From Paragordius varius (Eukaryota > Animalia > Nematomorpha): a DNA stretch of 64,000 nt. Location of the stretch: assembly GCA_964247055.1 (NCBI GenBank), contig OZ176053.1, positions 6,634,001-6,698,000 of the forward strand, given 5' to 3'. The notes beneath the pieces are model-generated. The model did no database searches and had not been told where the DNA came from. It saw nothing but the letters and a program-made list of their open reading frames with translations. A program made the translations under genes and the position numbers. The first letter of the stretch is position 1. Every line of letters starts with the position of its first letter. This document shows, in pieces, positions 3,976-56,000 of this stretch.

Positions 3976-6072
3976 ATGATGGGGTGTTTATTGTTTGATA
4001 ATACCTATAAACCTTTGGTTCCATGTATTTAAATTATAAAAATAATACAATATATATATATATATATATATAGTCAAAGAAGAGTCCACATTTTTTGTGT
4101 TTTATATTTTTATGTTCAGAAAAAGTAATATAAAGTTTCATTTAACATAAAGAACAATGGAACCAGAACCATTTTAAACGCTATCAAATAAAAATATTAC
4201 AAACCATTACGTCGGATTCATTCGGTTCTTTAGTATTTAACTCAATGTCTTTGTTAGCTAAGAGTTAAAAAGTCAGCCTATTCATCTCTAAACCGAAAAT
4301 GAATTATCAAATACATCAAATCAAAACATAGATAATTGATGAGTAAATAAAATATTTTATCTTAAAATTGGATAGTAACAAAAAGTTTATAGTGATGTAT
4401 TAATAAAAACTAGTTTCGTACTATTTTGATCTCTGATTTCGCGGGTCGTCATTAAACATTAATGCTAAACTATCCCGTTATTAATAGGTTAAGAGCAAAT
4501 AATACGTGATCTCTTGACGCTAACGCTTTATTAAAAACCTATCTAATCAAAGTTCCTAATTTTTAAACCCCATTACAAAAGCTTTTATTTTTTTGTAAAA
4601 TAATTTGAGGTTTCGGTTTAAAATTATCTTATTATCCTAGGTGGTTCTACCCAGCTAGATTATAACTAAAATATTAATGCACTTTAAAAACAGATTTTCG
4701 AGAAAATATGCCATGTGGAACGGCCCCGGGGCTAAAAATTTTTGCGAGGGCAGCAATATTTCAGAATGTACCGCCTAGCTAAAACGTTAACAAAAATTTA
4801 ATCAACATGTTTAAAACGAATCCCCGTCTATTGGTCTTAAAATTTATTTTAATAATGTATTAATAAATTTATTATATATAAATCGCTTCTTTAGCCAAAA
4901 TAAAAAATGATAAACCACGTTTGCTGCTTTATAGTACATATATAACATTTGTTAAAATACGGATTAAATTTTATCATGTTGATTGGCTAAAATGTGTTAA
5001 ATTTACATTATAGTTTTTTATCAAAATATTTTTTTCGGTTCTGTTTTACACGAGAAAGGAGTAAAAATATAAGTTATAAAATAAAAATTTCCTGTTTCAT
5101 ATTGATTTTGCGGTTCATATCTTATTTTTTTCCGTTATTTTTCTTCGATTACATCCTGAGAAGAGGATAAAAATTTTGCTTATCAATAATATTATTATTA
5201 TTATAATGTTAGATAATTAAAACTGTTTTAAATATATAAATATAATTCGATTATAGTTTTTGATTATTTAAGTAAAACAATACGTTAAACAATGCGCGTT
5301 TTTTTTCTTATTGCCTGAAGCGTTTCTCAGCCTTAGAGAAATAACATCGTTTATGCTGCATTCTATATTTTAATTATACAATAGTGTAGTTAGCGCAAAA
5401 TATTTTTTTTAAGTTTTTTATATATTTTTTTAATTTATTAACTTGTTTAATAAATATGGTTGTTATTATTAGCATTAATTATTTTATGTATATATATTTA
5501 TAAAAATGCGATTTTTTAATTCCATAAAAAGTTTTGACGTAAAATGTATGATGGCTAATAATTTTATTTACAAAAAAATTATGATAAAATAGCCATCACC
5601 AACGCAACACCACTGGTGATGCATTAATATTTATTTAAATGCTATGATGATGATATAGAAAAACAGAATACTAGTTTTTTTCATTCATTTTATATTTTTA
5701 TTTTTTACGTTCGAACCACAAATAAATTTTTATTTATCTATATACGAATCCGATATTCTTGCGAATTTTTTTTGGCCAATTCCTCCACTAGGGTATATAT
5801 AAAAATTATGTTTAAAATAAATGTCCATTTTTTAAAAGTACACACGCAGAAATTAGGTCAAAAGCTTTAATACTAGGTTTTATTTATAAAAAAATAATAT
5901 TTCTAAATAATTACCAACATACATCGCTAAATAATTAGTTTGCGCCAATTAAGTACACTAAGATACAAGTTAGGATATCTTTTAATTCAACCCATTTTTT
6001 TGGATTTTCCGGTTTTTTGTAATAAATAAATGTATTTTTATAATGTAGCTTGCTTGATATTAAAATTTAATA

Positions 6073-9000
6073 ATGAGCAAACAACGAGAAGAAAAATCTA
6101 AATTCAGTGCTAATTCGCCAAAAGGCAATGCGCTGCACGACCCTATCCGAAGATTGTTGATTGGAACTCCGGTTACCACATTCAACAAACGTAATAGTTT
6201 GGATATATCAGGTTAATATAAATATATACAATATACAGATTATCCTTTTGATTAATGGGTAAAAGCTTGAGTTGCATTAGGGACTTTTGAAAGCATCAAC
6301 ACGCCTTGCCCAGGGCTGACAGGGACGACATATTTGCTTATTACTGTTTATTACCGATAAAATAAAAAAACTACCATGTTATTTTTAAAACATCTCCGTT
6401 AGATTATAAAATGGATTGAATTTATTTTGTGTACATTGATTTTGTGATATTGCGCACAGAGGTTCACGATGACGAAGAAAAAGTGGTAATAAAAATGGAA
6501 AATTTGATGAATTCTTTGGCACAATTGTCGATTTTGGGTAACTCACCAGTTGTTACAACAAGCAAAAGTACAGTCAATGGTTTCAACAGCCATATTGATT
6601 CACTTAAAGGTGACACAGGGTCTAAAAACAATAATAATCACAATGACGCAAAACAAATAGATGAAATGGAAACGCTAAATAATTTTTTGTCGTGCGTCGG
6701 ATCTGGTACCAAATATCTGGGTAAAGCATATTATTATCGTAGAAGATCAGTGGTTCCCAACCTTTTTTTTACACGTCCTACCAAATTGAAAATAAAATTC
6801 TTGCACTCCCTGTCAAAAAAATCTATATTATTATAAAAATCACAATCAATATGAGATTCTTATATCTGCATTTTTTGAAATATTTTACCAAAAATTCTTC
6901 CATTTGTTTTTAGTTTTTGTTCTACGCTTTCCTTTTGGGAATCACTGCTTTAAATCAAAGGTGGGCAACAATATACATGGCCTCGCGGGCCGCACTCCCG
7001 TATCGGCTACTTTTATAATAAATATATATTAGATTTCAAACAAAAGGCTATAAAGGTTACAAACACAATAATACTACCATTTATTTCACCAATTTTTGCT
7101 AGTTCATTGCCAATATTTAAAACTATTCAAAAAATTTTTAGAAATATCATAAGATTTCGAAAATAACATAACTCTTAATGTTATATCAAAATTTAAAATT
7201 TTGGCGGCTACATATTACGGGGTTCGTTTGTTGCATATCTCTGCATAGTACTAAACTAAGCCTTGAAAAGTCAATGTTAATGTGCCGATTTATTTACAGC
7301 TGCCTAAAAATAAGATGTTCCGTTTAATATAATATTCACCAACAAATTTATAAAAGTTTATTACAAATTGTAGTGACAGAGAAAATATTTAGCATAAAGA
7401 AATAACCGCTCCCTTCCTAAGGATTTTATAATTTATATCATTTTTCCCCATTTTAGGATTCTTCCAGTAACACCCAAAATTTCCTTTTATTCATTTTTTA
7501 TTATAATTAAAAACATTGTGTTTGGTATATTTAGATCGAGCCAAAGCAATTTTCCATAAGATGTCCAACGTAGTCAAAAGTGAAGTCATTGACCCTGATT
7601 TACGGCTAAAGCTCCTAGAAATATTGGAGCTAAAATCATGCGTTGAGATGACCAAAAACAGCGATAAAAATAGTGCGAAACATACGAAGAGTAATTCGAT
7701 TAATATGCAGGTAATTTTAATTTATAAAATTATCAATTTTGATTAAAAATTTATGTATTTACTAATTAGAATGGAAACGAAAACGAATATCAAAATTCTA
7801 TTCTAGATTCTAAGCATTCTATGCTTTATACCCATGTTGCGAACGGTTATCAGAATGCTGAGGTATGTTTCTTTGTATTCGCAAACATGTTTCTATGCAG
7901 GTCTAAATTAAGATAATTTGCAGTTTACTAGAAACATATAATTTAAAAAAGCACAAAAGCTTATCCATCTATTTAGAGGTCGAAACGCCATATAAGCGAA
8001 AGAAATGCGAATCAGCTGCTAATTTATATTTTTGCTTAAAATTTCTAAAAAAATTTGATTGTTTAAAATATATAAGTCTCAAGATTCATTGGTTTTTGGG
8101 TCCAGAACATCTGTTGAAATGAATTTTGAATCAAGTTTAAAAATTAATTTAGAGTATACGTAGATAATTCAATCCAAAACATAGGAGATTTCAGTTTTGT
8201 GCAATATATACCGATATACATATTTGAAACTTCGAAATTTTTTGTTTAATACCTAAAATATTATATATGAAATAATTTAATCTAAGACCTTTAATTTATT
8301 ACAAGTAATTTTTATAATTATCAAACTATATTCCAAAAAGTTAAAATCTTTTGTTTTTCGCTTCTGGCGATTGACCCATTTTTATAAAAGAAATGATCCA
8401 CTGATCCAACTCTATTATATAACAAAGTGTGTTATCTGTCCACTTCTTGGCAGGGGCCGACAAACATTTAAGGCTTACGAGGTAGGATAGGCGTTTATAA
8501 ATTGACAAAATCTTATTTTGTTTTTATAAGTATTTTGGTATGATGCAAATTCTTTCAAATGCCACTGTTTACTAGTTAACTAATATAGCTAAAAAATTGA
8601 CCTTGTGTAATAATTTTGCATTTTTAAAACAACTTAGAAACTCTATTATATAACAAAGTGTCTTATCTGTCCACTTCTTGGCAGGGGCCGACAAACATTT
8701 AAGGCTTACGAGGTAGGATAGGCGTTTATAAATGGACAAAATCTTATTTTGTTTTTATAAGTATTTTGGTATGATGCAAATTCTTTCAAATGCCACTGTC
8801 TACTAGTTAACTAATATAGCTAAAAAATTGACCTTGTGTAATATTTTTGCATTTTTAAAACAACTTAGCATTGGTTTTAGACCTGATGAAGGTCAAATTT
8901 AAAAATACATGTTAGTTAAATGGTGCTGTTATGTCCGCCTATGTATGAAGCAATAATATTAAGATCAAGCAATATATAAATTAATATTTTAATAACCCCT

Positions 9001-17763: not shown

Positions 17764-19997
17764 TTACAAATTATTATTGATTTTGAAGGGGCACCTAGAC
17801 ATAACAACGGTTTCTTTATCATTAAAAGCGTATTCAGCCTTGTTATGCATAAATAATTTGCCGTCTGCAAAATAAAAACTGTCGGATTTCGTTTCGTACG
17901 GGTGATTGATCATATCCTGCTCTATAAAAATAAAATAATAGTACCCATTTATTTTAAAAAATAAGAAATGTTTAGATAACTATATACATACCATTTATAA
18001 TTCAAATTCACCATTAAACAATTCAAATTTACCATCGAACAATTCAAATTCACCGTTGAACAATTCAAATTCACTATAAATAATATAATCTTATGGCATA
18101 GTTTATTATTTTTTCAGTATTATATTAATTTTAAAAGTAATTTCTTTTTTAAATATAAAAAAATATAGGTAATTTTTAATCTTAAAAAAACATAATTTAT
18201 TTTAAAAGGCATTTGAATTGGGTGAATTTGAACAGTAAATGATATATATATTAAATTTAATATTATTTATTCCAGTATCCTGGTTAATAAATAAATGTCC
18301 ATATATAGATAACATATATATAGGAAAGGTGAATATTTCTGTTTAATATTGATGACAGAAATCAAGTGTATAGTTTTTGTGGAGCAAATTTTAAATGAAG
18401 ACACTATAAAAAATTTTACATAAGAAATAAGTTAATACAAATTTTATTTTTGCTTATTTCACAATATACCAACTTAAATAAACTTATTATATAAATGCGC
18501 ACTGTAAATTCAATGAAATCGAGATTTGGGTTAGAAAGTATAAATTAAAATGTATTATCTATAATAAATATTATATCAAATATAAAATGGGTCTCTCGTA
18601 TAGAATTCGGCATTCAATATAATAGAAATCTAAGACATAACAATATGGTTTAAAATAAACGCTTAAATAACCTATTAGGTGATATAATTAATAACCTATG
18701 CAATTTATAGCCAGGACATTAAAAGATACTTAAAAATAAACATACAGAAATTTCATTTGATTAATACACGTAAATTTTCTTAAAGTAAATTCATTTTCAG
18801 CTTTAACAGAATATATAAAGGCTAAACTTAGCAATCTTCTAGTTTTAAAGATCTTTGCAAAACTAGTCAAATAGATTAAAAATACCCAGGGTATCTTATA
18901 AAATCTAGTTGCGGTTCTTTTAAATATTATTTTTAGCCCAAACTATAGCTATAATACCAAATAGGAGCAATGTTTACTCATTGCCTGTGTAAAGAGAAAA
19001 TTTGCGTTGCTTATGTCTTAAGCTACTGAGAAAGCGGTGAAATGGAATAGATAGGGTATAAAAAAAATTCAACTTTATTTGAATATTATAAAAAGGATAA
19101 AAGAAAGGGAGCAAAATAAAGAAATATCAAGCAAAATTGAAAATGTGCACTATCGTAAACCAAAATGAGCTTTATGGATAATTTTGTCGATTTTTCACGT
19201 TTATCTCTATTGTTTAAAAATTCCAATGATAGTGTGTAGCAGCTCATTATGAAAAATTTAAAAGTTGCAAAGATTAAACAAATAATTTAAACGTAAACGT
19301 TGCTAATTTAGAAAAGGTGTGCTTAGTTTTAACCTCTCGCTTTATTATAGGTTATAAAAAAATTTACTTTGCATATTGGAAAGATATGGCATTGCATAAA
19401 TGTGTTCACATGTATTGATAGAATTCGGTATACAGTAGCCAAAAGTGAGATCAAATGATTTCAGCAGTTTTCGTTGGAAGTAGTGACGTTCAATCATTCG
19501 AAAGTCATTGATATTTTGATTAACAACAAATTCAACGCTATAATAATGAGAGAGGGCTTTACAAAGCAATTATTTATAAAAATTAATGATAACGATGGTA
19601 CGAACATGGTTACAACACACAGCAGTCATATAATGTATTACGTAGTGCCAATAACATTTATATCAAGGAATTCGGGTTTAAATTTATATCGCACTGTCCT
19701 TGATTCTAAATATTAAAATATTAATACCAAACAAATTGTGCTGTGGATTTACTTCGCATATTATCTTGTTTTTATCCAAATCTCGGATTTGAAACTTCAA
19801 AAAATCAACACCAAAAACATTTGCTTCGGGTTGACATAGAAAATCTTAACAATAAATAATTATAAACCGACAGTTGGCTGTTTTAAAGTTAAAACATTAT
19901 CTATTGATATAAAAGGTTGTTGCAAAAGTTTTGTCTCCAAATCCAGAAAAGATTTTTTATTGCACTTTAATCCTGCTACAGATTGATTATTTAACAT
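17764..19997 (-). CDS. UNC119: UNC119 (GMP-PDE delta domain lipid-binding chaperone), 212 aa; exons 19997-19868, 19844-19728, 19705-19642, 19537-19368, 17921-17764
   Basis: Spliced product: MLNNQ...[15 protein letters not shown]|[24 protein letters not shown]...|[21 protein letters not shown]|[48 protein letters not shown]...|[33 protein letters not shown]...NL*. 639 nt, all GT-AG. Confidence 0.95.
17981..18250. repeat. Small MITE-like element with 21-bp tandem units and an inverted copy, in the last UNC119 intron
   Basis: aattcaaattcaccattaaac-type unit x3.6 at 17999-18074; inverted atttgaattgggtgaatttgaa at 18211-18232; TA-rich flanks. Confidence 0.6.
19706..19727 (-). other. 22-nt spliceosomal intron in UNC119
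   Basis: Minus strand gtattaatattttaatatttag. Retention reaches TAA; removal joins HNLF|ESRTVRYKF (phase 1). Confidence 0.88.
19845..19867 (-). other. 23-nt spliceosomal intron in UNC119
   Basis: Minus strand gtttataattatttattgttaag. Retention gives GGT TTA TAA; removal joins KQPTV|DFLC (phase 1). Confidence 0.88.
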
Positions 19998-20714: not shown

Positions 20715-20826
20715 AAAACGTTTTTATTGATTGGGAAAATGTTTCGATTGACTGGAAAAACGTTTCGTTTGATTGGAAAAATGTTTCGATTGACTGGAAA
20801 AAAGTTTTTTTTGACTGGGAAACGGT
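20715..20826. repeat. 21-bp minisatellite (about 5 units)
   Basis: ttga(t/c)tgg(g/a)aaaa(t/c)gtttcg(a/t) units start at 20727, 20748, 20769, 20790, 20811. Confidence 0.9.
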
Positions 20827-21003: not shown

Positions 21004-23130
21004 TTAATGAGATGGATATGCCTGTTTTTTATTGCATAACAAATCAAATCTTGGTGTTATGTTTGAAACTGCTGGACGTAAGTCCTCCTCAACATTTTTC
21101 TCGCTGAACGATATTGGAATTTAATGTGTGTTAAAGCTGAGAAAATAATTTAACATAAATATGCAGTGTTGAATGGCAGAAGTACATTTAACGCTATATC
21201 GGCGATTGTGGAAAATTCAGTTCTTGTTCCGATCCAGAATTCAGTCAAGGGCTTTTTTTTGGAATTGTAAGTTTTAAGTTTGAACACGAAAGCTCACTAA
21301 AATCCTCTTTGAGGTTTAAGTGGCAGACGATCATTCTCACTTAACACTTGGGTTCAACAGGCTTTATAGTCCTTGGACTCAAATTAGGGTAGTTGGATAC
21401 CCAGGCCTGTTTTAAATCAAATACTTTAAAAAGTATGGAAAACGAAATGGCAAAATTTTGCACTTATATAACATTAATAAACCGAAATTTATAAAAAAAT
21501 TGTATTCAAAAATACTTTATCTTACTTATTTTAAGCTAAAACAAAAGGTAAAAATTTCGTCAACGTGACATGTGTGAAATGGTAAAATTTAAAAATAATA
21601 CGAAATAAACCGCTTTTCTCTCTCTCTCTCTCTCTATCAATGTTAGATAGTTTAATAAAAAATAAGCTTTAATTTTACCCTTAACACTTGGATACAACAC
21701 ACTCATTTTAGTCCTTCGATCCTAATTGGGGTAGTTAGATACCCCAGGCCTGTTTAAAAATAAAATTCTTTAAAAAATATGGAAGGAATCGAAACCATGG
21801 CAAATTTTTTCACTTATCTAACATTAATAAACCAAAATATATAAAAAATTGTATTTAACACTTGAATACAACACACTCATTTTTGTCCTTCGATTCAAAT
21901 TGGGGTAGTTGGATACCCCAGGCCTGTTTAAAATCAAATAGTTTAAAAAGTATGGAAGCAATCGAAATATAACATTAGTAAACCGAAATATATAAAAAAT
22001 TATATTTAAAAATACTTGATATTATTTATTTTGAGCTAAAACTGAAAGGTAAAAATTTAGTCAACGTGACATGTGTCAAATTGTAAAATTAAAAAATTAT
22101 ACAAACTAAACCGCTTTTTCTATTTTTATCAATGTTAGATGTAATTTATATAAAAAATAAGCTTTAGTTTTACCATTAAAATTAAATGAAGACGATATTT
22201 TGCAAAATTTTTGTAAAATAAAAATGGCGTCGAAGTAGTTTGAGGTGGGACTTTTTTTTCAAAACAAAATTTTATCAAGATATTTTGGCATATTTATATA
22301 ATATTTATCAGTATAGAAGCATAAATTTAAATTGGGACCGTTTCCTTCAGTAGTTTTTTAAAAATTTTAATTTAAATTTAGTCTGGGGTATTTAGATACC
22401 CCAATTTGAATCAAAGTGTTAAAAGTACTTGATATTACTTATTTTAAGCTAAACCCAAAAGGTAAAAATTTCGTCAACGTGACATGTGTCAAATTGTAAA
22501 ATTGAAATCAAACTAAACCGCTTTTTCTATTTCTATCAATGTTAGATGTAATTTATAAAAAAAATAGCTTTAGTTTTACCCTTAAAATTAAATAAAGACG
22601 ATATGCGTCGAAGTAGTTTGAGATGGAGCTTTTTTTTCAAAACCAAATTTTATCAAGATGTTTTGGCATATTTATATAATATTTTAAATTGGGACCGTTT
22701 CTTCAGTAGTTTTTTAAAAATATTAATTTAAATTTAGTCTGGGGTATTTAGATACCCCAATTTGAATCGAAGTGTTAAAATTCAAAGAAGACACTATTTT
22801 GCAAAAATTTTGTAAAATAAAAATGGCGTCGAAGTAGTTTGACATGGAATTTTTTTTCAAAACAAAATTTTGTTAAGATATTTTGGCATATTTATATAAT
22901 TTTTATTAGGATAGAAGCATAAATTTGAATTGGGACCGTTTTCTGTAGAGTTTTCTATAAATATAAATTTAAATTTAGCCTGGGGTATCTATATACCCCA
23001 ATTTGAATCAAAGTTTTAAGCCAATCCAAAACGGCTTTTGAATCCAAACTATTTTTTGAAAATTAATATTTGATATAATATGTCCGAAACTGTATTTTTA
23101 GCGCTTTTAACAGATCTACAATATGCAATA
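21004..23130 (-). pseudogene. C-terminal fragment of a hAT (Buster/Charlie, ZBED5/SCAND3-like) transposase, interrupted at 21341-23019
   Basis: Minus strand KPLTEFWIGTRTEFSTIADIALNVLLPFNTAYLC*IIFSALTHIKFQYRS...NVEEDLRPAVSNITPRFDLLCNKKQAYPSH* (stop 21004-21006), with stops and frameshifts. The upstream part WIQKPF lies at about 23030-23046. Confidence 0.85.
21341..23019. mobile_element. TTAA-flanked piggyBac-like non-autonomous element with internally duplicated ends
   Basis: TTAA at 21341-44 and 23016-19. Left-type ends ttaacacttg at 21341, 21681, 21855; right-type ends ccccaatttgaatc(a/g)aagt.ttaa at 22422, 22778, 23019. Subterminal palindrome ggggta-N6-tacccc. Confidence 0.75.
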
Positions 23131-38908: not shown

Positions 38909-40217
38909 ATGGACGGTGATACTATAACCTATTATTATTGGCCGCAATGTTACTTCTGCCAACGAGTATATGTTTAATAATTTAAAGGTAACTATCGCTT
39001 TAAACGAAAAAAATATACCACATAATGAGAAAGTTATTAGATTGTTAAAATTTGAAAATTTTGAACCAGAATTCATCAAAAAGAATCCTCTTTGTTTGGT
39101 CCCGGTGATTGAGGATCATGGTAATTTGATAAACGAATCTGATCGTATTATTGACTATCTTGAAAATAAGTTTCCCGAAAGTAAATTTAATAAAAATATG
39201 TACAGCTGTACATTTATACCCGGATAAATCTCAGACAGTTGAAAGAGAATCGATTGAAAAATTCAAGGAATTAATATCTAATGCACCTTTATCAGCGATA
39301 CATTTTGGTTGTCAATTGGATCCAGAATTTAGGAAGCATGTTAAGATGGATACCGAAATGATAAATGAATATATTAGTAAAAATTTATGCATATCTCTAA
39401 TTAGCTGTTTTTTTGTCAAATATTTTATAATTTCAACCTAAAAAATTATGCTGCTTATTACAAATTATTTTTTAACTTAGATATTGTGAGGAATAAAGTA
39501 AGTCACTTGAAGGATATGAAAAAATTGTATCCACAATTTGCTGAGATATATGACAAGAAAATCAAAATATCACAAAACATGAATATTGATAAGTACGCTT
39601 TTGAAATAGATGAGAGTATTGAAAATATGAAAAAAACGCTATTGGTCATCGAAAAACAATTGGCGAAAATGGACTCTGGTATGTTAGCTAATTTTTTTTA
39701 TAATCGAACACATTTTATAATACAGAACTAATATAGACAGTAAAGATAATACATCATTTTTTATATGAAGAACCATATTTTTAGACCCTTTTTAAATATT
39801 TTATTATATTAGGGTATTAAATATATAAAATAGATGGTAAAACAGACATCTCCATCACTATTTTTTATTTCAATCATACTTTTATAGGTCATTTAGAAAA
39901 AAATGGTATCTTTATAAACAATGTTTGTAATTTACCATTTATTCCATAAAGTTTTTTGTTAATGCATAATAGAGGGTAAAAAATGGCTGTGCACATCCAA
40001 TTTCTCGGTCGCTGATGTCTATCTCATACCCTTGTTGCATCGTTTGGATATTATGGGCATTGCAAATGAGTTGTGGGGACCTATGGATAAAAATCCACAG
40101 ATGCCTCACATTGCAAAATATTTCAAGGAAGTTATGAAGCGACCAGCAGTTATCAAAATGATACCGCAATATAAGTATGCCATATTACATAAATTAACTG
40201 TTGCTTTTATAAACTAA
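38909..40217 (+). CDS. GDAP1: GDAP1-like glutathione S-transferase family protein; exons 38909-38965, 38988-39180, 39206-39376, 39481-39678, 39973-40217 (3' end uncertain)
   Basis: MDGDTITYYYWPQCYFCQR|VTIALNEK...PEFIKKNPLCLVPVIEDHGNLINESDRIIDYLENKFPE|TVHLYPD...ISNAPLSAIHFGCQLDPE (GDAP1-type long alpha4-5 loop)...|EGKKWLCTSNFSVADVYLIPLLHRLDIMG...YFKEVMKRP. Confidence 0.88.
38966..38987 (+). other. 22-nt spliceosomal intron in GDAP1-like gene
   Basis: gtatatgtttaataatttaaag. Retention gives GTA TAT GTT TAA; removal joins CQR|VTIA (phase 0). Confidence 0.88.
39181..39205 (+). other. 25-nt spliceosomal intron in GDAP1-like gene
   Basis: gtaaatttaataaaaatatgtacag. Retention ends at TAA 39225-27; removal joins KFPE|TVHLYPD (phase 1). 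Confidence 0.88.
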
Positions 40218-40790: not shown

Positions 40791-43515
40791 CAGGGGTGGC
40801 CACACTTTTTTTGTCGCGAGCTTTTTTTTGGCTTTTTTGTTAAAAAAAGAGTTCGCGGTCACCCAGAAATATTTATCAAAAAAACTCAATCAACACTTTA
40901 AATGATGTATATACCTGCTTATTAGAGTGACTTGTTTAAACCATTTTAAAATTGTAATTTTTTTATCTAACCAAATACAAAAATAATTTTAATTAAAAGA
41001 CAACGGGTTATTAACTACCTTAATTTTTTAACCAACATAAAACACTTCAAAATATTTATTTACTAAATTTCTATTATATGAAATTTTACAATATAAAAAT
41101 TTAAACAATGCATTTGAAATTACAGGGGAGAATACATTATGATACAAAAAATAAAAGAAATAAAAAAATAGCATTCCAATTTAGAACCATAATTTGAACA
41201 TAAATAAGAGTACATTAAAATTGTATCAGTTTTAATTCTATCCACATATTTTTTAGTAAATCGGCTTTTTCCTAAGCGAAAATACAACTCGATAAACATC
41301 CATATTTAATAAAGAAAAAATATTTAAAACGCCCGACTGCGAAAAAATTCAGAAAGTTTATCTAAATTAGGTTCAAATGAAGTCAAAGCAATTCTCAAAC
41401 ATGATTCTAAATGTTTATTAGTTAATTGTGACCTCTGTTTAGTTTTGATAGCATTCATAATTGAAAAAGCTGATTCACATAAATATGTGGATCCAAAAAA
41501 AGAATTGAATAATGCAGCGGTTTTCCAAATATGGGGGTATTTATCTTTATTTATAAATTTATATATATCTGATCCTAATGATTTTAGATGGATATCGCAT
41601 TTAACATTTTAATTCCTCTTCCAACTCTGCTAAATTTGGTACACCAAGAAAGTGGCTGAGTTTTTGAGCAATATATTCAACATTATATTATTATTAAATG
41701 GGCATGATAAAAAAATAGCGATGTCTTCAAGTTTATTTATAGATGAAAATCGTTTTTCAAAATCATTAATAAGCAGACCAATATCATCTGCATATTTTTC
41801 AAAAGAGAGATTCTCTATTTTTTCAGACACCGCTGCCAGATTAAAAAAATGTTTTAAATCTCGGTTTTTTAATTGTGTTTCTACTACTGTTAGTGTTTCC
41901 TTAAAAGATTTTAAAGCACCCATCATATCCATTATTGTTTTATCTTTTCCTTGTAATTGTATGTTTAATTTATGCAATTTTTCCGTGATATCGCATAAAA
42001 ATGCAAGATCAAGCAGCCAATCTTGATCTTTCAATTCAGGGTATGAAAATTTAGAATTCTCTAAAAAAATTTCTATTTGTGGTAAAAGTTGCCTAAATCT
42101 AATTAAAAATGCGGCACGACTCAACCACCTTACATCAGTATGTAATAAAAGTTCTCCATATTCCACGCCGCACTCATTTAACAAAATTCGAAATTGGCGG
42201 CGTGACAAGCTTTTGGTTCGAATGGCGTTAACAATTTTAAAACAGGGGTTCATTACATGATGGTATTTTAAAACTTTTGAACATAAAACTTGATTATGGA
42301 TTATACAATGGTAATCAATGAACTTGGGAAATGCACTTTGATTTTTACATAAAGCGATAAAGCCGTTGTTAACGCCAATCATAGCTGGAGCTCCATCAGT
42401 AGTTATAGATGTGAGTTTTACGATGGGAAGTTTCGTATCTGTGATAAATTTTATAAAAAGAATCAAAAATATCCTGCCCTCTGGTTCGTTAGTGGAGAGG
42501 TATTATAGTTAATAATTCCTCCTTTGCAGATAACTAAATATCAGAATATAAAAATGCATAATTGGGCGATTCCAACATAATCGGTGGACTCATCGAGTTG
42601 CAAGGAAAAAAAATACAGTTATTAATATTTTCATGTAAAATTTCATCAAGATTATTACTAATATCTTCAGCCCTGCGCATAACGGTATTTCTCGATAAGC
42701 TTATGCTTTTAATAGCTGTCATAATATTATTTTTGTTATCAAAATTTTCAAATAAAATATCACAAGCGCTAATAAAGGCTTCTTTAAATATTTCACCATC
42801 TTGGAATGGCTTATTGTTCCGAATGAGTATTTCCGCTACCTTGAATGAAGCAATCGTAGCATTTTTATAGTCTTTGTTGTATTTAAGTATGCTATTTTGT
42901 GAGGCGGATAATTATTCTTTTAATTCCTTTACTTTAATGTTGCGTTCTTGAGTTTGTAAGGGGTAGTTTTTGGAGTAATGTGGATGCAGAGATCTATAAT
43001 GTCTTTCAATATTTGACTTTTTGGGCAAAGCAACAGTACTATTGCATATTAGACAGGTGCATGTTTCATTTATCCTAATAAAAAAGTATTCATGCTCCCA
43101 ATCTTTCTTGTATCTGTACAACTTTTTTTGGCTCATTCTAAAATATAAGTTTTAAAAACCTACTTTTGGTGTATCAAATCAAATCTAACTTCACGATTAT
43201 GCTTCTGATTTATGAATAAGCTTTGCTCAAAGTTTTGATATATTCAAGGGAAATGACTGATTTTAAGTTTTAATGCAAATGCTCCAAAATATATGAATTA
43301 AAATTAATAAAATAATTTTTTTACACCCTTTTCTTAGACGTTTTTTTTTAATTTAAACCGTATTTTTTTGTATTTTAAATTTAAATTCGCTCAGAAGTAG
43401 CCAACTATCCGAAAAAAATCAATAAAATTTTTTTAAAAAAAATATTTTCAGGCGGTCACTTTTTGAGTTGTCGCGGTCACGAAAGTGACCGCGGTCACCT
43501 CGTTGGCCACCCCTG
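40791..43515 (-). mobile_element. Full-length degenerate hAT DNA transposon (Charlie/SPIN, GTF2IRD2-like transposase), 2725 bp
   Basis: 12-bp perfect TIR CAGGGGTGGCCA / TGGCCACCCCTG; 8-bp TSD ctatatga / ctatatgt (7/8 match). Confidence 0.93.
41324..43136 (-). pseudogene. hAT transposase pseudogene
   Basis: BED-like CLIC...RHYRSLH, in-frame TAA at 42912-14, NKPFQDGE, SLSRNTV, frameshift to LQLDESTD, ITTDGAPAM, HCIIH, VRWLS, GSTYLCESAFS. Several stops and frameshifts. Confidence 0.92.
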
Positions 43516-47018: not shown

Positions 47019-50000
47019 ATGCATGTTTTAATTAATATTTTTTATGATATCCTGGTTATTTTGTGTTCTGTTGGTAGCGCGAATTCCTTTTCAAACGATT
47101 TACCCAATGACATTCCGTTGATCCCTAATTTTAATCCTGAGACTCAGGTAACACGCAATTAGGGCTCAATTCGTATTCGAAATAGAGTCAAACCTTTTTT
47201 ATGCAACTTATTTTAATAGCCATAAAGATTCTCAAAATAAATAAAAGGAGAAATTGGTTGATAAATGTTGTTTTTTGATATATATATATGTGAAAATTTC
47301 AATATTCACGTCTTTTCGATTGTATAATAAGTATATTGTATATTTACTCGGAAAAATGGATAGAAAAATTAAAACTTCGAAAGAATAGGCATTAAATTAC
47401 TGTGAAAAAGCCGTTTTTTTAAAGATATCTCACATTTTACATCGACCAATATCTGTTGATAAATCTAAAATTAGAAATTTTTTAATAAAACATTCTTTGT
47501 CCGGCTAACGCACATAAAACGATTTTTATATTATAATTTATTTAAATTTTATCACATTTAAAAAAACCAGGGAAAATAAGCGAATAACAGAATAAGTAAG
47601 TATATATATTGCGAAAAAGTTATTAATTATTGTAAAATAGCATATGTAAAGAGAATTATTATTGGCGAATAATAGCAAAAAGTGAAAAAAATAACTAGCC
47701 AATTATACTGCCCTTTGTTGTACATGCTATTTGGAAATTAATCACTTTTTAGCAATGTATACTTACTCATACTGTCATATTTCATATGTAATAGAATAAA
47801 ATTGTTCTTTTTTAGTTAATTTCATATATCATAAAGTACTTTATAAGTTGGTATAGTTTTTGGTAGAAAACTAATGGAAATCAGTTTTTATCTAAATAAA
47901 CTATATTAAAAAATTCGGACTTGCATGTTTGAAATATGATATAAAGTTTAATAAATAAATTGTATATTTTATAATTATACTATTATGGAGTGCTATATAT
48001 TTTCTGATAGAAAAGTGCATCAAAATTATCATGGTTGTTTTGGGCTTTACGAGTAATTAAAAAGGTCTAATCACTTTTGGGAATTTTGAAAAATTCAAAT
48101 CGCAAAATTAGCATAAACCTAGATTAAGTTTTTTGGTGAAAGCTAGAAGTTTATTCCAAAAAATATCATTAAAAATCATAAACTATAATTAGGCAAAAGA
48201 ATAATTTATAAAATTTTAATTTTTTGATTGTCCGATCCCAATTTTCAATTGGCTTCTTTAATAATGTAAAAATAGTGAAAATTCCGAGATTGCACATATG
48301 CTAGATTATGACATCAAAAATAATAATAATGAAAAATGCAAACTTCGTTTTGAGTAAGAATTTATGGTGTTTTGGATATTGGTGAAAACGGTGTAAAAAC
48401 ATTTTAAGGTATTGTAAAATACAATTTCTTTAAAATTTGATGATGCCAAACATTCTATCAACTTAGAATTTTGAATGAAGGATGTATTTGTCTATAAAAT
48501 TATGTTAAATATAAAATATGACTTTTACATAAGTTTTCTCAATGTATACGAACCTTCTACTCAACATTCTGAAGTAATAGAAATGTTCAGCCTCGTCTAA
48601 ATAGAAAAAGTATATTAATAATATCTTATTGCTACCGTTTTCACCAATATACAAAACACCGTAGAATACGCTAACACAAAATTTTGCTAAAAAAAACTTT
48701 TGAAACAAAATGTGCATTTTTTCGAAAATAATTTATTTTATATTTAAATCTAGATAGTCTAATATTATAACCTGCAATCTCAGCTTAGAAAACAAGCCCA
48801 TTTTGAAAGAGGCTAAATATATAAAACTTCCGGACCCCAAATAAAATCTAAAATTTATTAAAAAATGTTATGTATAATAACTTATTTGTTTTTGTTAACT
48901 TAACTCAATTAATCTTATTTTAGTTACCATTGAAAATATAATTTGTGCATAATACACCTTTATACTTGTTACGCTAAAAATGTATATTATCTTGGTTGTG
49001 AATGCTTTTACCTAAATAATGTAATATTGAACCTTATGCAAATATATAACTTGTGAATGCTTTCATCTAAATATTGAAATATTTAACCTTATGCAAAAAT
49101 GCAACCTCGCTCTAAAACTATATATAATGGAACATAGTTTTTTTATGATATAAAATAAATTCCTTTTTTCCACTTATTACATTTGACGCGGTCGATTTTT
49201 GTTTTTTGTATTACGTTGTATTCATTATTATGGAAAAAATAAGTATTGAAAGTTATAAAATCAATAATAATTTTACGGAATATATTAAATATTTACGAAG
49301 AAATTTAGTAATTAAAGGAATACAGGATAATAATGAAAATATTAAAGCCATCTTTCTTGCCCAATCCGGTATTGATAACATTTCTAAAATGGAACAATTC
49401 TTTTACCCCGTTAATATTGAAAACATATCTTGGGAGGAGATTTATGAAGCTGGGGTGAAAATATTTCAGCCAACCAAAAATACTTTTTTATCCCGATTCG
49501 AATTTTTTAGAGCGGAACGATTAGCGGGTGAAGGATTCTTGGAATTTTTTATAAGACTCAAAAATATGGCCGCTGCATGCGAATTCAAAGGAAACGTTGA
49601 CGAATTAATACGGGACGTGTTTATATGTGGGTTGAAGGAGAAAAAACTAGAGACTGAACTGCTGAACAGGTACCCAAAGGCATTAGACAACGACATACCA
49701 GTGGGATTAAATAAGGTTCTAAATCTGGCATTAGCGTATGAAAATTCTCACCTGGAAGGGAACTCAGTGAGAGCAATATATAATAATGAAAGTATTAATA
49801 ATGGTAATAATAATGGTATTACTAATGGTAATAATAATGAAACTTTTAATGATGGTAGTATTAATAATAATGAAATATATCTGGTAAGACGCAAACCTGT
49901 CGTAAAATCGTGTTTTAAATGCGGTCGCGCCCACAAATACGGATGCTGCCCAGCGTTTGGGAAGGTATGTTTCAAATGTCAGGGTAGAAATCATTTCGGA

Positions 50001-53000
50001 AGCCAATGCCAAAACAAATATGCTGGCAATAACAGGTATGTGAATAATATCGTAAATAAACCTAAAATAAATGTAAAAATAAACTCAACCCACGTCGAAA
50101 TGTTATTCGACACGGGGGCCGACATATCTTTAATAAATTTTAGCACGTGGGTTAAAATAGGAAAGCCTAAAATAAAACCCATTTATTTTAACATAAACAC
50201 TTATGATAATAATCCTTTACACATAATAGGAGAGACAACTGTAACTCTTGAATTAAATAAATTAAAAAAGATAACAAAATGCTTTATTACGAAGAGACAT
50301 CTTCCTCTAATATTTGGCATGGATTGGATCCAGCTATTCAATATCTCATTGCCTAACGAATTATATATTAATAAATTATATCACACAAATGATATTTACA
50401 ATAAATTTAAGTCTTTATTTGATAACAAATTGGGTTGTTGGAAAGGAGAACCCATAAAGATATTTTTAGAAAACAATAGTAGGGGACGGGTATTTCCGGC
50501 TAGAAGGGTTCCCTTGGCCTTACAAGAGAAATTAAGTGAAGAGATCAAAAGGCTAGTATCCTTAAAAATTATTGAACCAGTAGACCCCAAGCAATCTAAA
50601 ATTTGTTGGTCCAGTCCTATAGTAAACGTATTAAAGTCAAATAATGAATTAAGAATATGCGCAGATTTTAAAGTGTCCATAAACAAATACATTAAAACAC
50701 CTCAATATATAATACCCACATTTGATGATTTGATTTCCAAAATTTCACATGGTAAGACGTTTTCAACATTAGATTTAAAAGATGCTTATCTTCAGATTCC
50801 AGTGCATCCGGAATCTCAAAATCTTCTCACAATATCCACACCTCTTGGGTTTTTTAAATATACTAGGCTCCCTTTTGGTCTGTCGTGCGCACCTAGTTTT
50901 TTCCAACAAATCATGGATGAGCTATTAGGAGATTGTAAGGGAACAGCGGTCTATTTAGATGATGTAATTGTTACGGGGGAAACGGATGAGGAGCATTATA
51001 GAAACCTAACACAAGTATTTGAAAGATTAGAACGAATGGGTCTTAAATTAAAAAAAGATAAAATAAAGCTTTTTCAACAGGAAGTAGAATATTTGGGGTT
51101 TACTATATCAGAAAAAAGTATAAAACCAGCGTGCAGTAAGATTAAAGCCATTCGCGAGTGTCCAGCCCCTAAAGATAAAACAAGTCTCCGTTCGTTTTTG
51201 GGCCTTTTAAACTTTCATTCACGATTTATACCTTCTCTAAATACAATTGTTAACGAACTCCATCAGCTAGCTGGTTCCAAAAAGAAATGGTGTTGGACCG
51301 AGGTACACCAAAATATTTTTGAAAGGGCGAAGCTATTAATAGGGAATAACAGCCGCCTCTTCCCTTTTAACCCCAGACTTCCCCTTATTCTAGAAACGGA
51401 TGCATCTGGGGAGGGGTTTGGGGCCATTTTGTCGCACAGAACGTCGGAAGGTAAACGACCCATTGCATATTTTTCAAAAAAATGTTCCCCGGCAGAAAAA
51501 AATTATTCGGTTATAGAAAAAGAGGCAAAAGCCATTGTATTGGCCCTAGAGAAATTTAAAACATTTTTATATGGCAGAAAATTTGAGATTAGAACAGATC
51601 ATAAACCTCTTATCAAATTATTCGGGCAGCAACGTGTATTAAGCGAGCTAAACAATAGTAAATTGCTAAGATGGATTTCAAAAACATCCATTTTCGACTT
51701 CAACATAATGTACTACCCAGGAACCGAAAATCTAGCAGATTCACTATCAAGACTACCAACTGAGATAACTGAAGAATGTGACAATGACGAGGATATAGCG
51801 CAGGAGGTCCGGTTGCTATGGTGTCAGGAGTTAAACTTAAACAAGGAGAGGGTGCTTAAGGAAACTATGAGCGATGAGACGTGTAAACAGATTAAAGCAG
51901 CACGAAAGACTAATGATTGGTCTCATCCGGGGGTGCAGTCCTATAAACCACTGAGGAATGATATCGAAGAATCATACGGCCTTCTATATTTAGGTGACCG
52001 CCTTATTGTGCCTCAAAGCATGAGGGTTGATGTTCTTAACTATCTTCATAAAGGTCACCCGGGTATACAGTCCATGAAAGCGTTAGGTAAGAGTGGTGTG
52101 TTTTGGCCGAATATGAACCAGGAAATCGAAAAATGGGTGCAAGGCTGCTCAAATTGTCAAAAGTCACGGTTTAACATTGCAGTAAGCCCGACGTATAAAT
52201 GGAACCCGAACACCACCGTTTGGGAGCGATTGCATCTCGATATAGCGGGGCCCGTAGATAACCTTTACTGGGTCATACTTATAGATCACTGCACCCGTTG
52301 GGTGGAAGTAGCACAGCTTAAAACAGTGAACTCGATCAGTATTTTGAAAGTTTTAGAAGGTTGGTTTGCACGATATGGCACCCCAGAGATGATCGTAACT
52401 GATAATGCGTCGTATTTTAAGTCCGGTGATTTTGAAAGAATATTAAGTTCCTCTAATATCAAGCATGTAACCTCTGCGCCATACCACCCTCGGACAAATG
52501 GTTTAGTGGAAAGGGTCATTCAAACATTGAAAACGCACTATTATATGTGTTCTGAAGTAGCAGATCCAGAACGCCGGTTAAACCAGGTACTGTGGGCTTA
52601 CAGATCAGCACATCACAATGGTATAAATGAGACACCTGCACGACTATTCCTAAAACGAAATATACCGACTCCGCTGTCTTGGATGAAAGGCAAACCAAAG
52701 GATTATATCGATGGTACCTCAGATATTATACGTGAGTTCGTTCCAGGTGAGAAAGTGTTTATAAAAAATGAGTTGGAAGCCGGTTGGCGAGAGGGAAAAG
52801 TTGTAGAGCGGACTGGATTATTGTCCTACAATATCGAAGATAGAGGTAGGGTTTTACGAAAGCATACGGATCAATTAAGAAGGCGAAAAGAAGGTCCCGA
52901 TGAACTTAAGCTAGACGACCCGAAAGAATTGGATAAGCTAGACGACCCGAAAGAATTGGAATCGGAACAACAGAATAATAATGATAATATCATAGCCACC

Positions 53001-56000
53001 CCATTGCATGGTCCTCCTATTGATGACAATATTAATAATGATGATACCAATCCTTCCCCGGATATTTGTCAAGATTTCCACAATAATCAGCAAAGTCCCA
53101 ACGGCGATAAGATTGCAGAACCCCCAAGCTTTGAAGTACCAGTGGAGAGACGCTATCCTACCAGAAACCGAAAAGCCCCTGACAGATACACAAATCACTT
53201 TTAAATTAGATAGGAGATATGTTATGTATAATAACTTATTTGTTTTTGTTAACTTAACTCAATTAATCTTATTTTAGTTACCATTGAAAATATAATTTGT
53301 GCATAATACACCTTTATACTTGTTACGCTAAAAATGTATATTATCTTGGTTGTGAATGCTTTTACCTAAATAATGTAATATTGAACCTTATGCAAATATA
53401 TAACTTGTGAATGCTTTCATCTAAATATTGAAATATTTAACCTTATGCAAAAATGCAACCTCGCTCTAAAACTATATATAATGGAACATAGTTTTTTTAT
53501 GATATAAAATAAATTCCTTTTTTCCACTTATTACAAAAAATAATCTTTATTATTTATATATAGTTTATAATATATTTTAATGATAATTTTTATAATGCGC
53601 AAATTTTGCGATTTTACGATATGGAACAATTACCATAATGGAAATAATTTTAAGTAATGCACCATGAGAACTCTGACAAATTTTTTCAGAATATATATTG
53701 TTCATCAGGATATTTTTCTATATCCTCCAATTTTGTGCAATATGTAGTTTCAAACGATAAAATTTTGATTTTTACTCATCTTAATTAAATAAGTAGCAAT
53801 AAAAGATTAGTAAATCAATGCAAAACATTATAAATAAATAAATTATTTTATGGCTGTCATTATATCAAAATCATATTCAATAAGAAATTTGTGTATGGAC
53901 AAAAAGTATATAATTAAATTGCAAATGCAAAGTAGTCATTTTTTGACATAAAAAACGAAGAATTCCCAACCACAAAAAATATATACTATATTTTAATTAT
54001 TTTTTTTGCCTTTTACAAAATTATATTAAAACTTTTTATTAGATAACTTTGAATTCGACGAAGTCTCAAAACCCGAATTCGATACACACAAATGGTAACT
54101 ATCAATGAATAATTTTATTTGTGTTTTAAAAAAAAATTATCTTTACAAAAAAAAGACTTACCTATTATCTAATTCAAGCCTCAAATATTGCCAAAAAAAA
54201 ATTGAAATAATAACATGGTAAGGTTATAATTTGTAAGATAAATATGTCTTTTTCTAAAATATTCGTAGAAATTTTCAAAAATTAGAATGAATGACGAAAC
54301 TGATTATGTTGATTATTTTAATATTAAAGAAATGTTAAAATGAATGCTAAAAATAGATTATCGTCAAATCCTATTTTGATTAAAAAATGATTACTGTTCG
54401 CAAAAACGCCGGGTTCTTCCAATAAATGATCAGCTATTCAATAATCTCAGTAATGCCCTTACTATTTATTGTAACCAATCATGTCTGAGATTATATTATA
54501 ATATATTTACATAAATATGTTTTGTATGATTTGATACAGTTGTCCAACACGCGGCCCTCCGAGATAGTGAGCGACCCGCGAAAAATTCGAAAAATTACCA
54601 AAAACCTAAATTCTATAATATGCAAAAATAATTTCAAAATCCTGATAAAATTAATAGTTCAACAAATTTTCTATAAGTTTCCAAATTTTAGCAATAAACT
54701 AGCAATAATTTGTTAAATAAATACTAGTCTCGTATTATTTACAGTCGATGCTTAAACTTTACAAATATATATATAAAATCTCATAAATTTTTTGAATACA
54801 GACCGCGAATCCTGTGTTAAACACATTCTTATCATTATTATCCTTATATAAATACTGTAGAAACCGTTAAAGAAGAATCTTAGTTAAATTTATTTATAAG
54901 ACTGTATATTGTTAGTTCTCGCTTTGCCTCCATGTTCTCTCTTTTTTAATTTATAGAGCTGTCTATGATTTTGCCATATAGTTGAATGGGTTTTCAAGTT
55001 TTGTAATTTTTCAGATATTAATAAACTTTGTGCTACCGCAAATATGTCTGTATTGTTTTGTCTATTAGAACACTTATTTTTCAAACCATAATTATTTTAT
55101 TAGTTTCAAAATGATTTGCCTAAAGTGCGTAAATTATTATGGGTATCGCCAAATCTCTTATCACACATTTTAAATTATCAACTAAGTGTTTCTAAAATCA
55201 AAGAAAACGGTTAAAACTATACCTTAAATATTTGTACTTTTTACCTTTTAAAGATCAATGAAATACCTATCAAAGTTTTCATTCTGTTTTTTGCTTTCAT
55301 AATGTCAATTTACCATTAGGAGTATATATCAGAGTAAAATTATATTTGCACACTATGTAAGAAAGTTCATCTCTTTCTATTATGTTAGGTAAAGCACCTT
55401 GACATAATTAATACTAAATTTTTGGTTTCGTTTAGGATAATTATGTATTTGATATATATTTAATATACTTTAACTTTGTAGTAAAGAAAACTCAAAAAAG
55501 AAAGTCTCAACATCCAAAGTTTTATATTGAAGCACGAATATATAAAGAATCTTCTGATGATTATCTAACTATGGAACAATTGGAAACCTATGTAATTTTT
55601 AGCGGGTTGATTTTTTTCGAAATTATTTTATTTTGACATAAATTTTTCATGATAACTTAATATGTTGGAATATTGAGTTTTATTTAAATAAAAAGGACAT
55701 ATTTTTTAAACCTTAGTTTTTTGATAAAACCTATCGTTTTGGGTTGCTAAATATGGAAGATATGCAAATCTGTAATAGTAATCAATACGTTATATGAAAA
55801 AATAAGGTGAAAATATTATTTAGCTATCTTTTTATATTTGTCTTCTATTACCTTTTGTCTTTTATAATATTATTTTTTATTATAAAACTAATTATCAGTT
55901 TTTTAAAAATTCAATAAATACATTTTATGTTTTGATTATTGATATTTTAAAATGTCAATATCTTCTATTTTTACTTTATATTTATATTTTATAACCTTAT

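Follow-up and report, generated by a model that had tools for sequence, protein, structure and literature searches.

The UNC119 gene of the horsehair worm Paragordius varius has four introns at ancestral sites, the first two putatively miniaturised to 23 and 22 nucleotides

The UNC119 gene of the horsehair worm Paragordius varius (Nematomorpha) raises the question of how an animal gene is read when its coding sequence is interrupted by two segments of only 23 and 22 nucleotides (nt), and of whether such segments are old introns which became short or new introns which arose at this place. The gene is found within 64,000 nt of contig OZ176053.1 (GenBank assembly GCA_964247055.1, positions 6,634,001–6,698,000 of the forward strand), a stretch with a GC content of about 27% which is called the window in the following. 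It occupies positions 17764–19997 of the window on the minus strand. Taking all evidence together, we consider it likely that this is an UNC119 gene with four ancestral introns, of which the first two have been miniaturised and are putatively spliced. We infer the removal of the segments from the RNA, their branch site as well as the direction and the timing of the length change.

By reading the letters and with the help of a script the gene could be divided into five exons. Exon 1 (19997–19868, 130 nt) begins with the ATG at 19997, which is the first ATG downstream of an in-frame stop, and its last base is the first one of an Asp codon divided by intron 1; the C-terminal half of its translation aligns with the ITPEDVL..T block of the orthologues. 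Intron 1 (19867–19845, 23 nt, phase 1) interrupts the codon before (Y/F)LC and is followed by exon 2 (19844–19728, 117 nt). Intron 2 (19727–19706, 22 nt, phase 1) lies in the variable loop of the protein, where it splits a Glu codon (G|AA), and exon 3 (19705–19642) comprises 64 nt. Intron 3 (19641–19538, 104 nt, phase 2) is located in the Thr codon before VEF, exon 4 (19537–19368, 170 nt) encodes the most conserved block of the protein and intron 4 (19367–17922, 1446 nt, phase 1) separates it from the coding part of exon 5 (17921–17764, 158 nt), which extends to a TAA codon. In the alignment the C-terminus encoded by exon 5 is longer by about 15 residues than that of other UNC119 proteins. An earlier note on this DNA, made from the letters alone, had proposed a five-exon UNC119 gene with introns of 23, 22, 104 and 1446 nt, and these sizes are exact by the coordinates. 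The about 65-fold range of intron sizes it mentioned amounts to 66-fold (1446/22), and the region 19706–19867 to which it pointed comprises exon 2 and the two tiny introns that flank it.

All four introns are bounded by GT (5′) and AG (3′), and their excision restores a continuous and homologous reading frame. When intron 1 is read through, an in-frame TAA codon follows after two codons. The 22 nt of intron 2 are not divisible by three, and read-through shifts the frame into a stop. Thus, as read-through leads to a stop in each case, both tiny segments need to be removed for the gene to be readable.

For a comparison of the intron sites the UNC119 loci of nine species were used. For the annotated proteins a script rebuilt each sequence exactly from exon chains with GT/GC-AG introns, and the introns of the fluke were placed by eye. 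Introns 1–4 measure 11,243, 838, 1954 and 593 nt in the hairworm Gordionus, 7655, 714, 1018 and 823 nt in the brachiopod Lingula, 9703, 376, 9814 and 913 nt in the horseshoe crab Limulus, 11,278, 8511, 1206 and 2073 nt in the acorn worm Saccoglossus, and 9350, 921, 701 and 1421 nt in UNC119A of the bird Zonotrichia. The fluke Clonorchis has four introns of 33, 32, 34 and 38 nt. Intron 2 is absent in the sea anemone Exaiptasia (introns 1, 3, and 4 of 143, 133 and 1981 nt) and in the UNC119B-like gene of the pipefish Syngnathus (287, 101 and 789 nt), and both intron 1 and intron 2 are absent in the fly Glossina (introns 3 and 4 of 73 and 2126 nt).

Intron 1 is found in phase 1 and in one and the same alignment column in all species having it, that is in eight of the nine comparators (all but Glossina). 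Intron 2 is in phase 1 in every species that possesses it (Gordionus, Lingula, Limulus, Saccoglossus, the bird and Clonorchis); the split codon is a Glu codon (G|AA or G|AG) in the window gene, Gordionus, Lingula, Saccoglossus and the bird, with the site lying within one codon. Exon 2, which is bounded by these two introns, has 114 nt in Lingula, Limulus, Saccoglossus and the bird and 117 nt in the window gene. All nine comparators share intron 3 in phase 2 in the codon before VEF (Thr, or Met in the fluke) as well as intron 4 in phase 1, six residues past the L-S/T of the loop. In addition, dozens of genomic open reading frame (ORF) fragments of other animals start with R/S-VEF and end with ...S/G-K. 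Such starts and ends are what is obtained when the reading frame runs through a phase-2 AG and a phase-1 GT, respectively, and therefore support introns 3 and 4 independently. Exon 4 between them has 173 nt in all nine comparators versus 170 nt in the window gene. To the exact nucleotide and in phase, the tiny segments coincide with introns of other phyla, so that chance is not a credible explanation for their position. Judged by this alignment, we take introns 1, 3, and 4 to be inherited from at least the common ancestor of cnidarians and bilaterians, and intron 2 to go back to the bilaterian ancestor or beyond.

The earlier note had stated that the junctions look like those of vertebrate UNC119, in which case ancestral introns would have shrunk rather than new ones arisen. 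In fact, UNC119A of Zonotrichia (exons of 370, 114, 103, 173 and 110 nt) has introns at the same four sites and in the same phases, and the shrinkage is supported by the shared sites and phases together with the 11,243 and 838 nt found in Gordionus. The fly, a further comparison suggested there, agrees in part: Glossina has introns 3 and 4 at the same sites, but introns 1 and 2 have been lost. With the exception of the fluke (33 and 32 nt) the introns at the first site measure 143–11,278 nt and those at the second site 376–8,511 nt in all comparators having them. As the orthologues hold long introns at the same sites, it is parsimonious that old introns shrank and not that new ones were gained. 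Relative to Gordionus the shrinkage would amount to about 490-fold for intron 1 and about 38-fold for intron 2, and the most parsimonious placement is on the branch of P. varius itself. Thus, we suggest that the UNC119 pre-mRNA retains four introns of the bilaterian ancestor, the first two of which would have been reduced to a mere 23 and 22 nt in this lineage; intron 3 would now have 104 nt, and intron 4 appears to have stayed long with its 1446 nt and its tandem repeats.

In principle the lengths could also have changed in the other direction, with tiny introns already present in the hairworm ancestor and a re-expansion by transposon insertion in Gordionus. With 25% GC the locus of Gordionus, too, is AT-rich and intron 1 extends over 11 kb there, which would speak for this order of events. 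However, Lingula, Limulus, Saccoglossus and the bird hold 7.6–11.3 kb at the first site and 0.4–8.5 kb at the second. Since the outgroups are long at both sites, long introns are the state common to Gordionus and the outgroups. Re-expansion in Gordionus is therefore less likely than shrinkage in the lineage of P. varius, and we regard it as unlikely.

Exon 3 is with 64 nt the shortest of all (76–121 nt elsewhere, 106 nt in Gordionus), and the acidic loop is missing. A single deletion which removed the 3′ portion of intron 2 and continued into the beginning of exon 3 could conceivably have caused both shortenings.

The exact borders of the tiny introns were examined by a script which enumerated every in-frame and stop-free GT-AG pair around each junction. 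For intron 1 only the choice of 23 nt keeps the conserved D-FLC-P-EAN block, which is lost with every alternative (44, 77, 86 and 101 nt). For intron 2 the choice of 22 nt retains an Arg residue at the second position before VRY, which is present without exception in the nine comparators, and on the strength of this residue 22 nt is the favoured length.

The tiny introns of UNC119 start with GTT or GTA and end with TTAAG or TTTAG; apart from the overall richness of the sequence in T, no pyrimidine tract is present. Tiny introns are also present in a second gene of the window. At the start of a GDAP1-like gene (38909–39440, plus strand), whose exon 2 matches the GST_N family with an E-value of 1e-13, we observed GT-AG introns of 22 nt (38966–38987) and 25 nt (39181–39205); in both cases the coordinates and the reading frame were checked. 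These two introns share the ends, the position of an A residue and the TAAT-like features with the tiny introns of UNC119. In all four tiny introns of the window an A is found at position –8 or –9 along with a TAAT-like motif, which is, however, expected by chance in AT-rich sequence. We suggest that the tiny introns are most likely ordinary U2-type GT-AG introns which would be removed by intron definition with usage of the first AG. The 5′ signal would be minimal (GTT/GTA) and the A residue 8–9 nt before the 3′ AG, in an A-rich or TAAT-like stretch, is the probable branch site.

Several observations weigh against the interpretation given so far. First, intron 2 lies in an indel-prone loop and is homologous to the introns of the other species only to plus or minus one codon, and the loop lengths of Gordionus and Clonorchis differ further; as the site falls in the variable acidic loop, identity of the alignment column is not to be expected for this intron. 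Second, the pattern of TAAT and an A at minus 8 stems from only four introns in AT-rich sequence and carries no statistical weight. Third, the branch A would be unusually close to the 3′ splice site (only about 6–8 nt from the AG) if it resides in the TTAAT of the 22-nt intron. Fourth, among 359 UNC119 relatives, which were collected by a HMMER search with exon 4 and by word searches with the full-length proteins of a tunicate and of Gordionus, no transcript-derived protein of P. varius was present, and the identity to any of the exon pieces did not exceed 79%.

Finally, there are two alternatives of 34 nt for intron 2 (19727–19694 and 19732–19699) which are in frame. Thus, the intron might in reality have 34 nt, or both acceptors might alternate. 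In this case the 12 nt at 19705–19694 (minus strand, codons E-S-R-T) would be intronic whenever the AG at 19695–19694 is used, the loop would be shorter by four residues and the 23-nt intron 1 would be the smallest intron of the gene. Both choices are free of stops, the form 19727–19694 places a Phe directly before VRY as in most orthologues, and with this form the distance between branch site and AG would be more usual. On the other hand, the 34-nt choices lose the invariant Arg and the residue directly before VRY is variable (F, Y, C, S). Moreover, the first AG past the branch site is normally the one that is used. We therefore regard an intron 2 of 34 nt as rather unlikely and keep to the length of 22 nt.

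One could further ask whether the segments are spliced at all. The protein is just 45–52% identical to other UNC119 proteins and its loop is shortened, which might indicate a decaying pseudogene, or the segments might be assembly or indel artefacts. Yet all conserved blocks of UNC119 are retained in the five exon pieces, which are open, and the GT..AG ends are located at the exact nucleotide and in the phase of old introns, which is not expected of random indels. In addition, a like pattern is present in the second gene of the window. With conserved exons that are open and GT..AG ends at ancestral sites, both a pseudogene and assembly indels were rejected; we judge them very unlikely. Programmed frameshifting was likewise rejected. 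The segments also fall in the size range of the short sequences which ciliates are known to eliminate, and one could imagine that they are removed from the DNA in a programmed manner, similar to ciliate internal eliminated sequences (IES), and not from the RNA. Such sequences were rejected as an explanation, as the boundaries are GT..AG and not TA repeats; furthermore, the sites coincide with spliceosomal introns of the nine animals compared, and the protein is clearly metazoan and hairworm-like. DNA elimination is thus exceedingly improbable, and we continue to consider the segments as spliceosomal introns.

The identity of the gene was established with the exons searched singly and not as a joined protein. 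The matches to the Pfam family GMP_PDE_delta (PF05351) are collinear: exon 2 corresponds to profile positions 1–29 (E-value 1e-3), exon 4 to 66–121 (1e-21) and exon 5 to 124–155 (3e-9), with exon 3 (20 amino acids, aa) being too short for Pfam scoring. Against chains of UNC119A and UNC119B in the PDB exon 4 gave E-values of 3e-19 to 2e-18, compared to 4e-4 for PDE6D. As exon 4 scores far better against UNC119A/B, the gene is UNC119 and not its paralogue PDE6D. UNC119 is a beta-sandwich chaperone of N-myristoylated proteins whose cargo is released by GTP-bound ARL2 or ARL3. The core blocks are conserved in the alignment, and the protein of P. varius would likewise be a putative chaperone of myristoylated cargo.

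The exon pieces are 52% identical to Gordionus and 45–50% identical to the other comparators in the nine-species alignment. In the same alignment 15 residues are common only to the window gene and Gordionus, whereas any other species has 0–5 such exclusive residues. This supports an affinity, though a distant one, to the hairworms. The Gordionus orthologue is XP_065314502.1 (Gordionus sp. m RMFG-2023, G. montsenyensis) and was reached by a full HMMER search with exon 4. When the Gordionus locus was compared to the window by tblastx and blastn, only the UNC119 exons matched, and neither DNA similarity nor shared neighbours were found within the 6-kb flanks. The locus would represent UNC119 as a single-copy gene in an animal genome rich in AT, with the Gordionus gene as its nearest annotated relative. 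A word search with exon 4 gave a single match, an 89-aa fragment on an animal contig. UNC119 exons 4 and 5 are found on the animal contig ctg12293 of the metagenome assembly ERZ25067582 (ENA; 1.5 Mb, 38% GC) at positions 6070–8364 of the fetched stretch. There, an intron of about 2 kb separates the two exons, its site being identical to that in the window gene, and no upstream exons are present within 6 kb.

UNC119 is best known for carrying lipidated cargo into cilia. According to Cunha et al. (2023), as cited in PMC12094185, most ciliary genes are missing in hairworms. UNC119 is intact in the window and in Gordionus despite this reported loss, which fits non-ciliary roles of the protein such as those described in PMC6179904. 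The hairworm UNC119 may therefore reveal what UNC119 does without cilia.

The surroundings of the gene contain several repetitive and mobile elements. Upstream of UNC119, an AT-rich repeat of 150–400 nt is clustered in the region 21330–23020, with three or more copies in direct and several in inverted orientation. The copies share the core GGGGTAGTTGGATACCCCAGGCCTGTTT, which suggests a MITE- or SINE-like family. A minisatellite with 21-nt units (20715–20822, 5 copies) is also located in the upstream region, and two further minisatellites reside inside intron 4: one at 17999–18074 with 3.6 copies of 21-nt units and one at 18147–18206 with 2.3 copies of 27-nt units. On the plus strand at 49206–53204 there is an intact retrotransposon ORF of 1332 aa with the domains RVT_1, RT_RNaseH, Integrase_H2C2 and rve. 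This domain order is that of a long terminal repeat (LTR) element of the Gypsy type. A 278-aa ORF on the minus strand (41630–42466) resembles by eye the C-terminal part of a transposase and has no Pfam match at an E-value of 0.01. Scans of the window with Rfam and for tRNA genes found no RNA genes.

How do these introns relate to the short introns known from other animals? Introns under about 30 bp had been thought to be absent from animals until a survey of 51 metazoan genomes (Mol Biol Evol, September 2026; PMC13644364) reported introns of less than 30 bp, found only in myxobolid myxozoans and in Dicyema japonicum. The survey ties ultra-short introns to parasitism and genome reduction (PMC13644364). 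As introns of 22–27 bp are established in these two animal lineages (PMC13644364), a size of 22–23 nt is physically possible. Nematomorpha are not named in the main text of the survey, and the word intron is absent from two nematomorph genome preprints.

We tentatively raise the possibility, about which we are rather more doubtful than confident, that the horsehair worms add a third animal lineage to those with spliceosomal introns of less than 30 nt, independent of the other two and different from them in kind. Here, the miniaturisation to about 21–25 nt would concern promoter-proximal introns only; the downstream introns would stay long and the genome large and transposon-rich, with a second hairworm having introns of kilobase scale at the same sites. 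If this is true, intron length would be shaped by a position-dependent process, for example, co-transcriptional splicing of 5′-proximal introns or a deletion bias, and not by genome compaction. The UNC119 gene provides a nucleotide-exact case in another phylum, with two ancient introns of 22–23 nt here versus 838–11,243 nt in the second hairworm. The added value of the present analysis is the full site-by-site comparison over nine species together with the contrast to an orthologue within the phylum. P. varius and Gordionus form a natural pair to ask for the lower limit of intron length and for the reason why only 5′ introns are affected.

The Gordionus gene XP_065314502.1 resembles the window gene in its five exons, in the sites and phases of its introns and in the conserved blocks. 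In contrast, its introns 1 and 2 have 11,243 and 838 nt and not 23 and 22 nt, the acidic loop is kept and the C-terminus is about 15 residues shorter than that of the window gene. The RefSeq isoform X2 of Gordionus UNC119 (OX940784.2, 17554–18391 of the fetched stretch) reads past the donor of exon 2 and has exon 3 replaced by non-homologous residues; it is probably an intron-retention or alternative-donor model and not a functional isoform.

The UNC119 gene of Clonorchis sinensis (GAA55653.1) likewise has all four introns at the same sites, and these are very short (33, 32, 34 and 38 nt). Unlike the window gene, which spans 22–1446 nt, the introns of the fluke are uniformly short and all above 30 nt. 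The deposited model (DF144056.1, 8001–8800 of the fetched stretch) is one uninterrupted ORF of 672 nt. It treats the first three introns (33, 32 and 34 nt), which are real, as coding sequence, with a change of frame at two of them, and stops within the fourth intron of 38 nt, so that the last exon is missed; when the four GT-AG segments are excised a normal UNC119 is obtained. Gene finders with a minimum intron length of 30–40 nt would break or truncate genes with such introns, and the Clonorchis model is one failure of this kind.

A further close parallel is provided by the ultra-short introns of the myxobolids and of Dicyema. In these animals the 5′ signal is reduced to GTa, the 3′ end to a bare AG and A residues are found a few bases upstream of it (PMC13644364). 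The tiny introns of P. varius agree with them in several respects: they are GT-AG introns of about 22–27 bp in a parasitic animal, they are situated at conserved ancestral positions between conserved exons, and they have the reduced GTa 5′ signal, lack a genuine polypyrimidine tract and carry A residues shortly before the AG. On the contrary, the genomes of the myxobolids and of Dicyema are compact with a genome-wide median intron of 22–27 bp, whereas the window gene also has introns of 104 and 1446 nt, only the first two introns of the window UNC119 are tiny, and the surrounding 64 kb are gene-poor and rich in repeats and transposons. The gene thus has introns of less than 30 nt, as is typical for the genome-wide ultra-short-intron type, but not the uniformly short introns and the compact genome of this type. 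As its tiny introns share the gene with an intron of 1.4 kb and are long in the second hairworm, this case separates miniaturisation from genome compaction.

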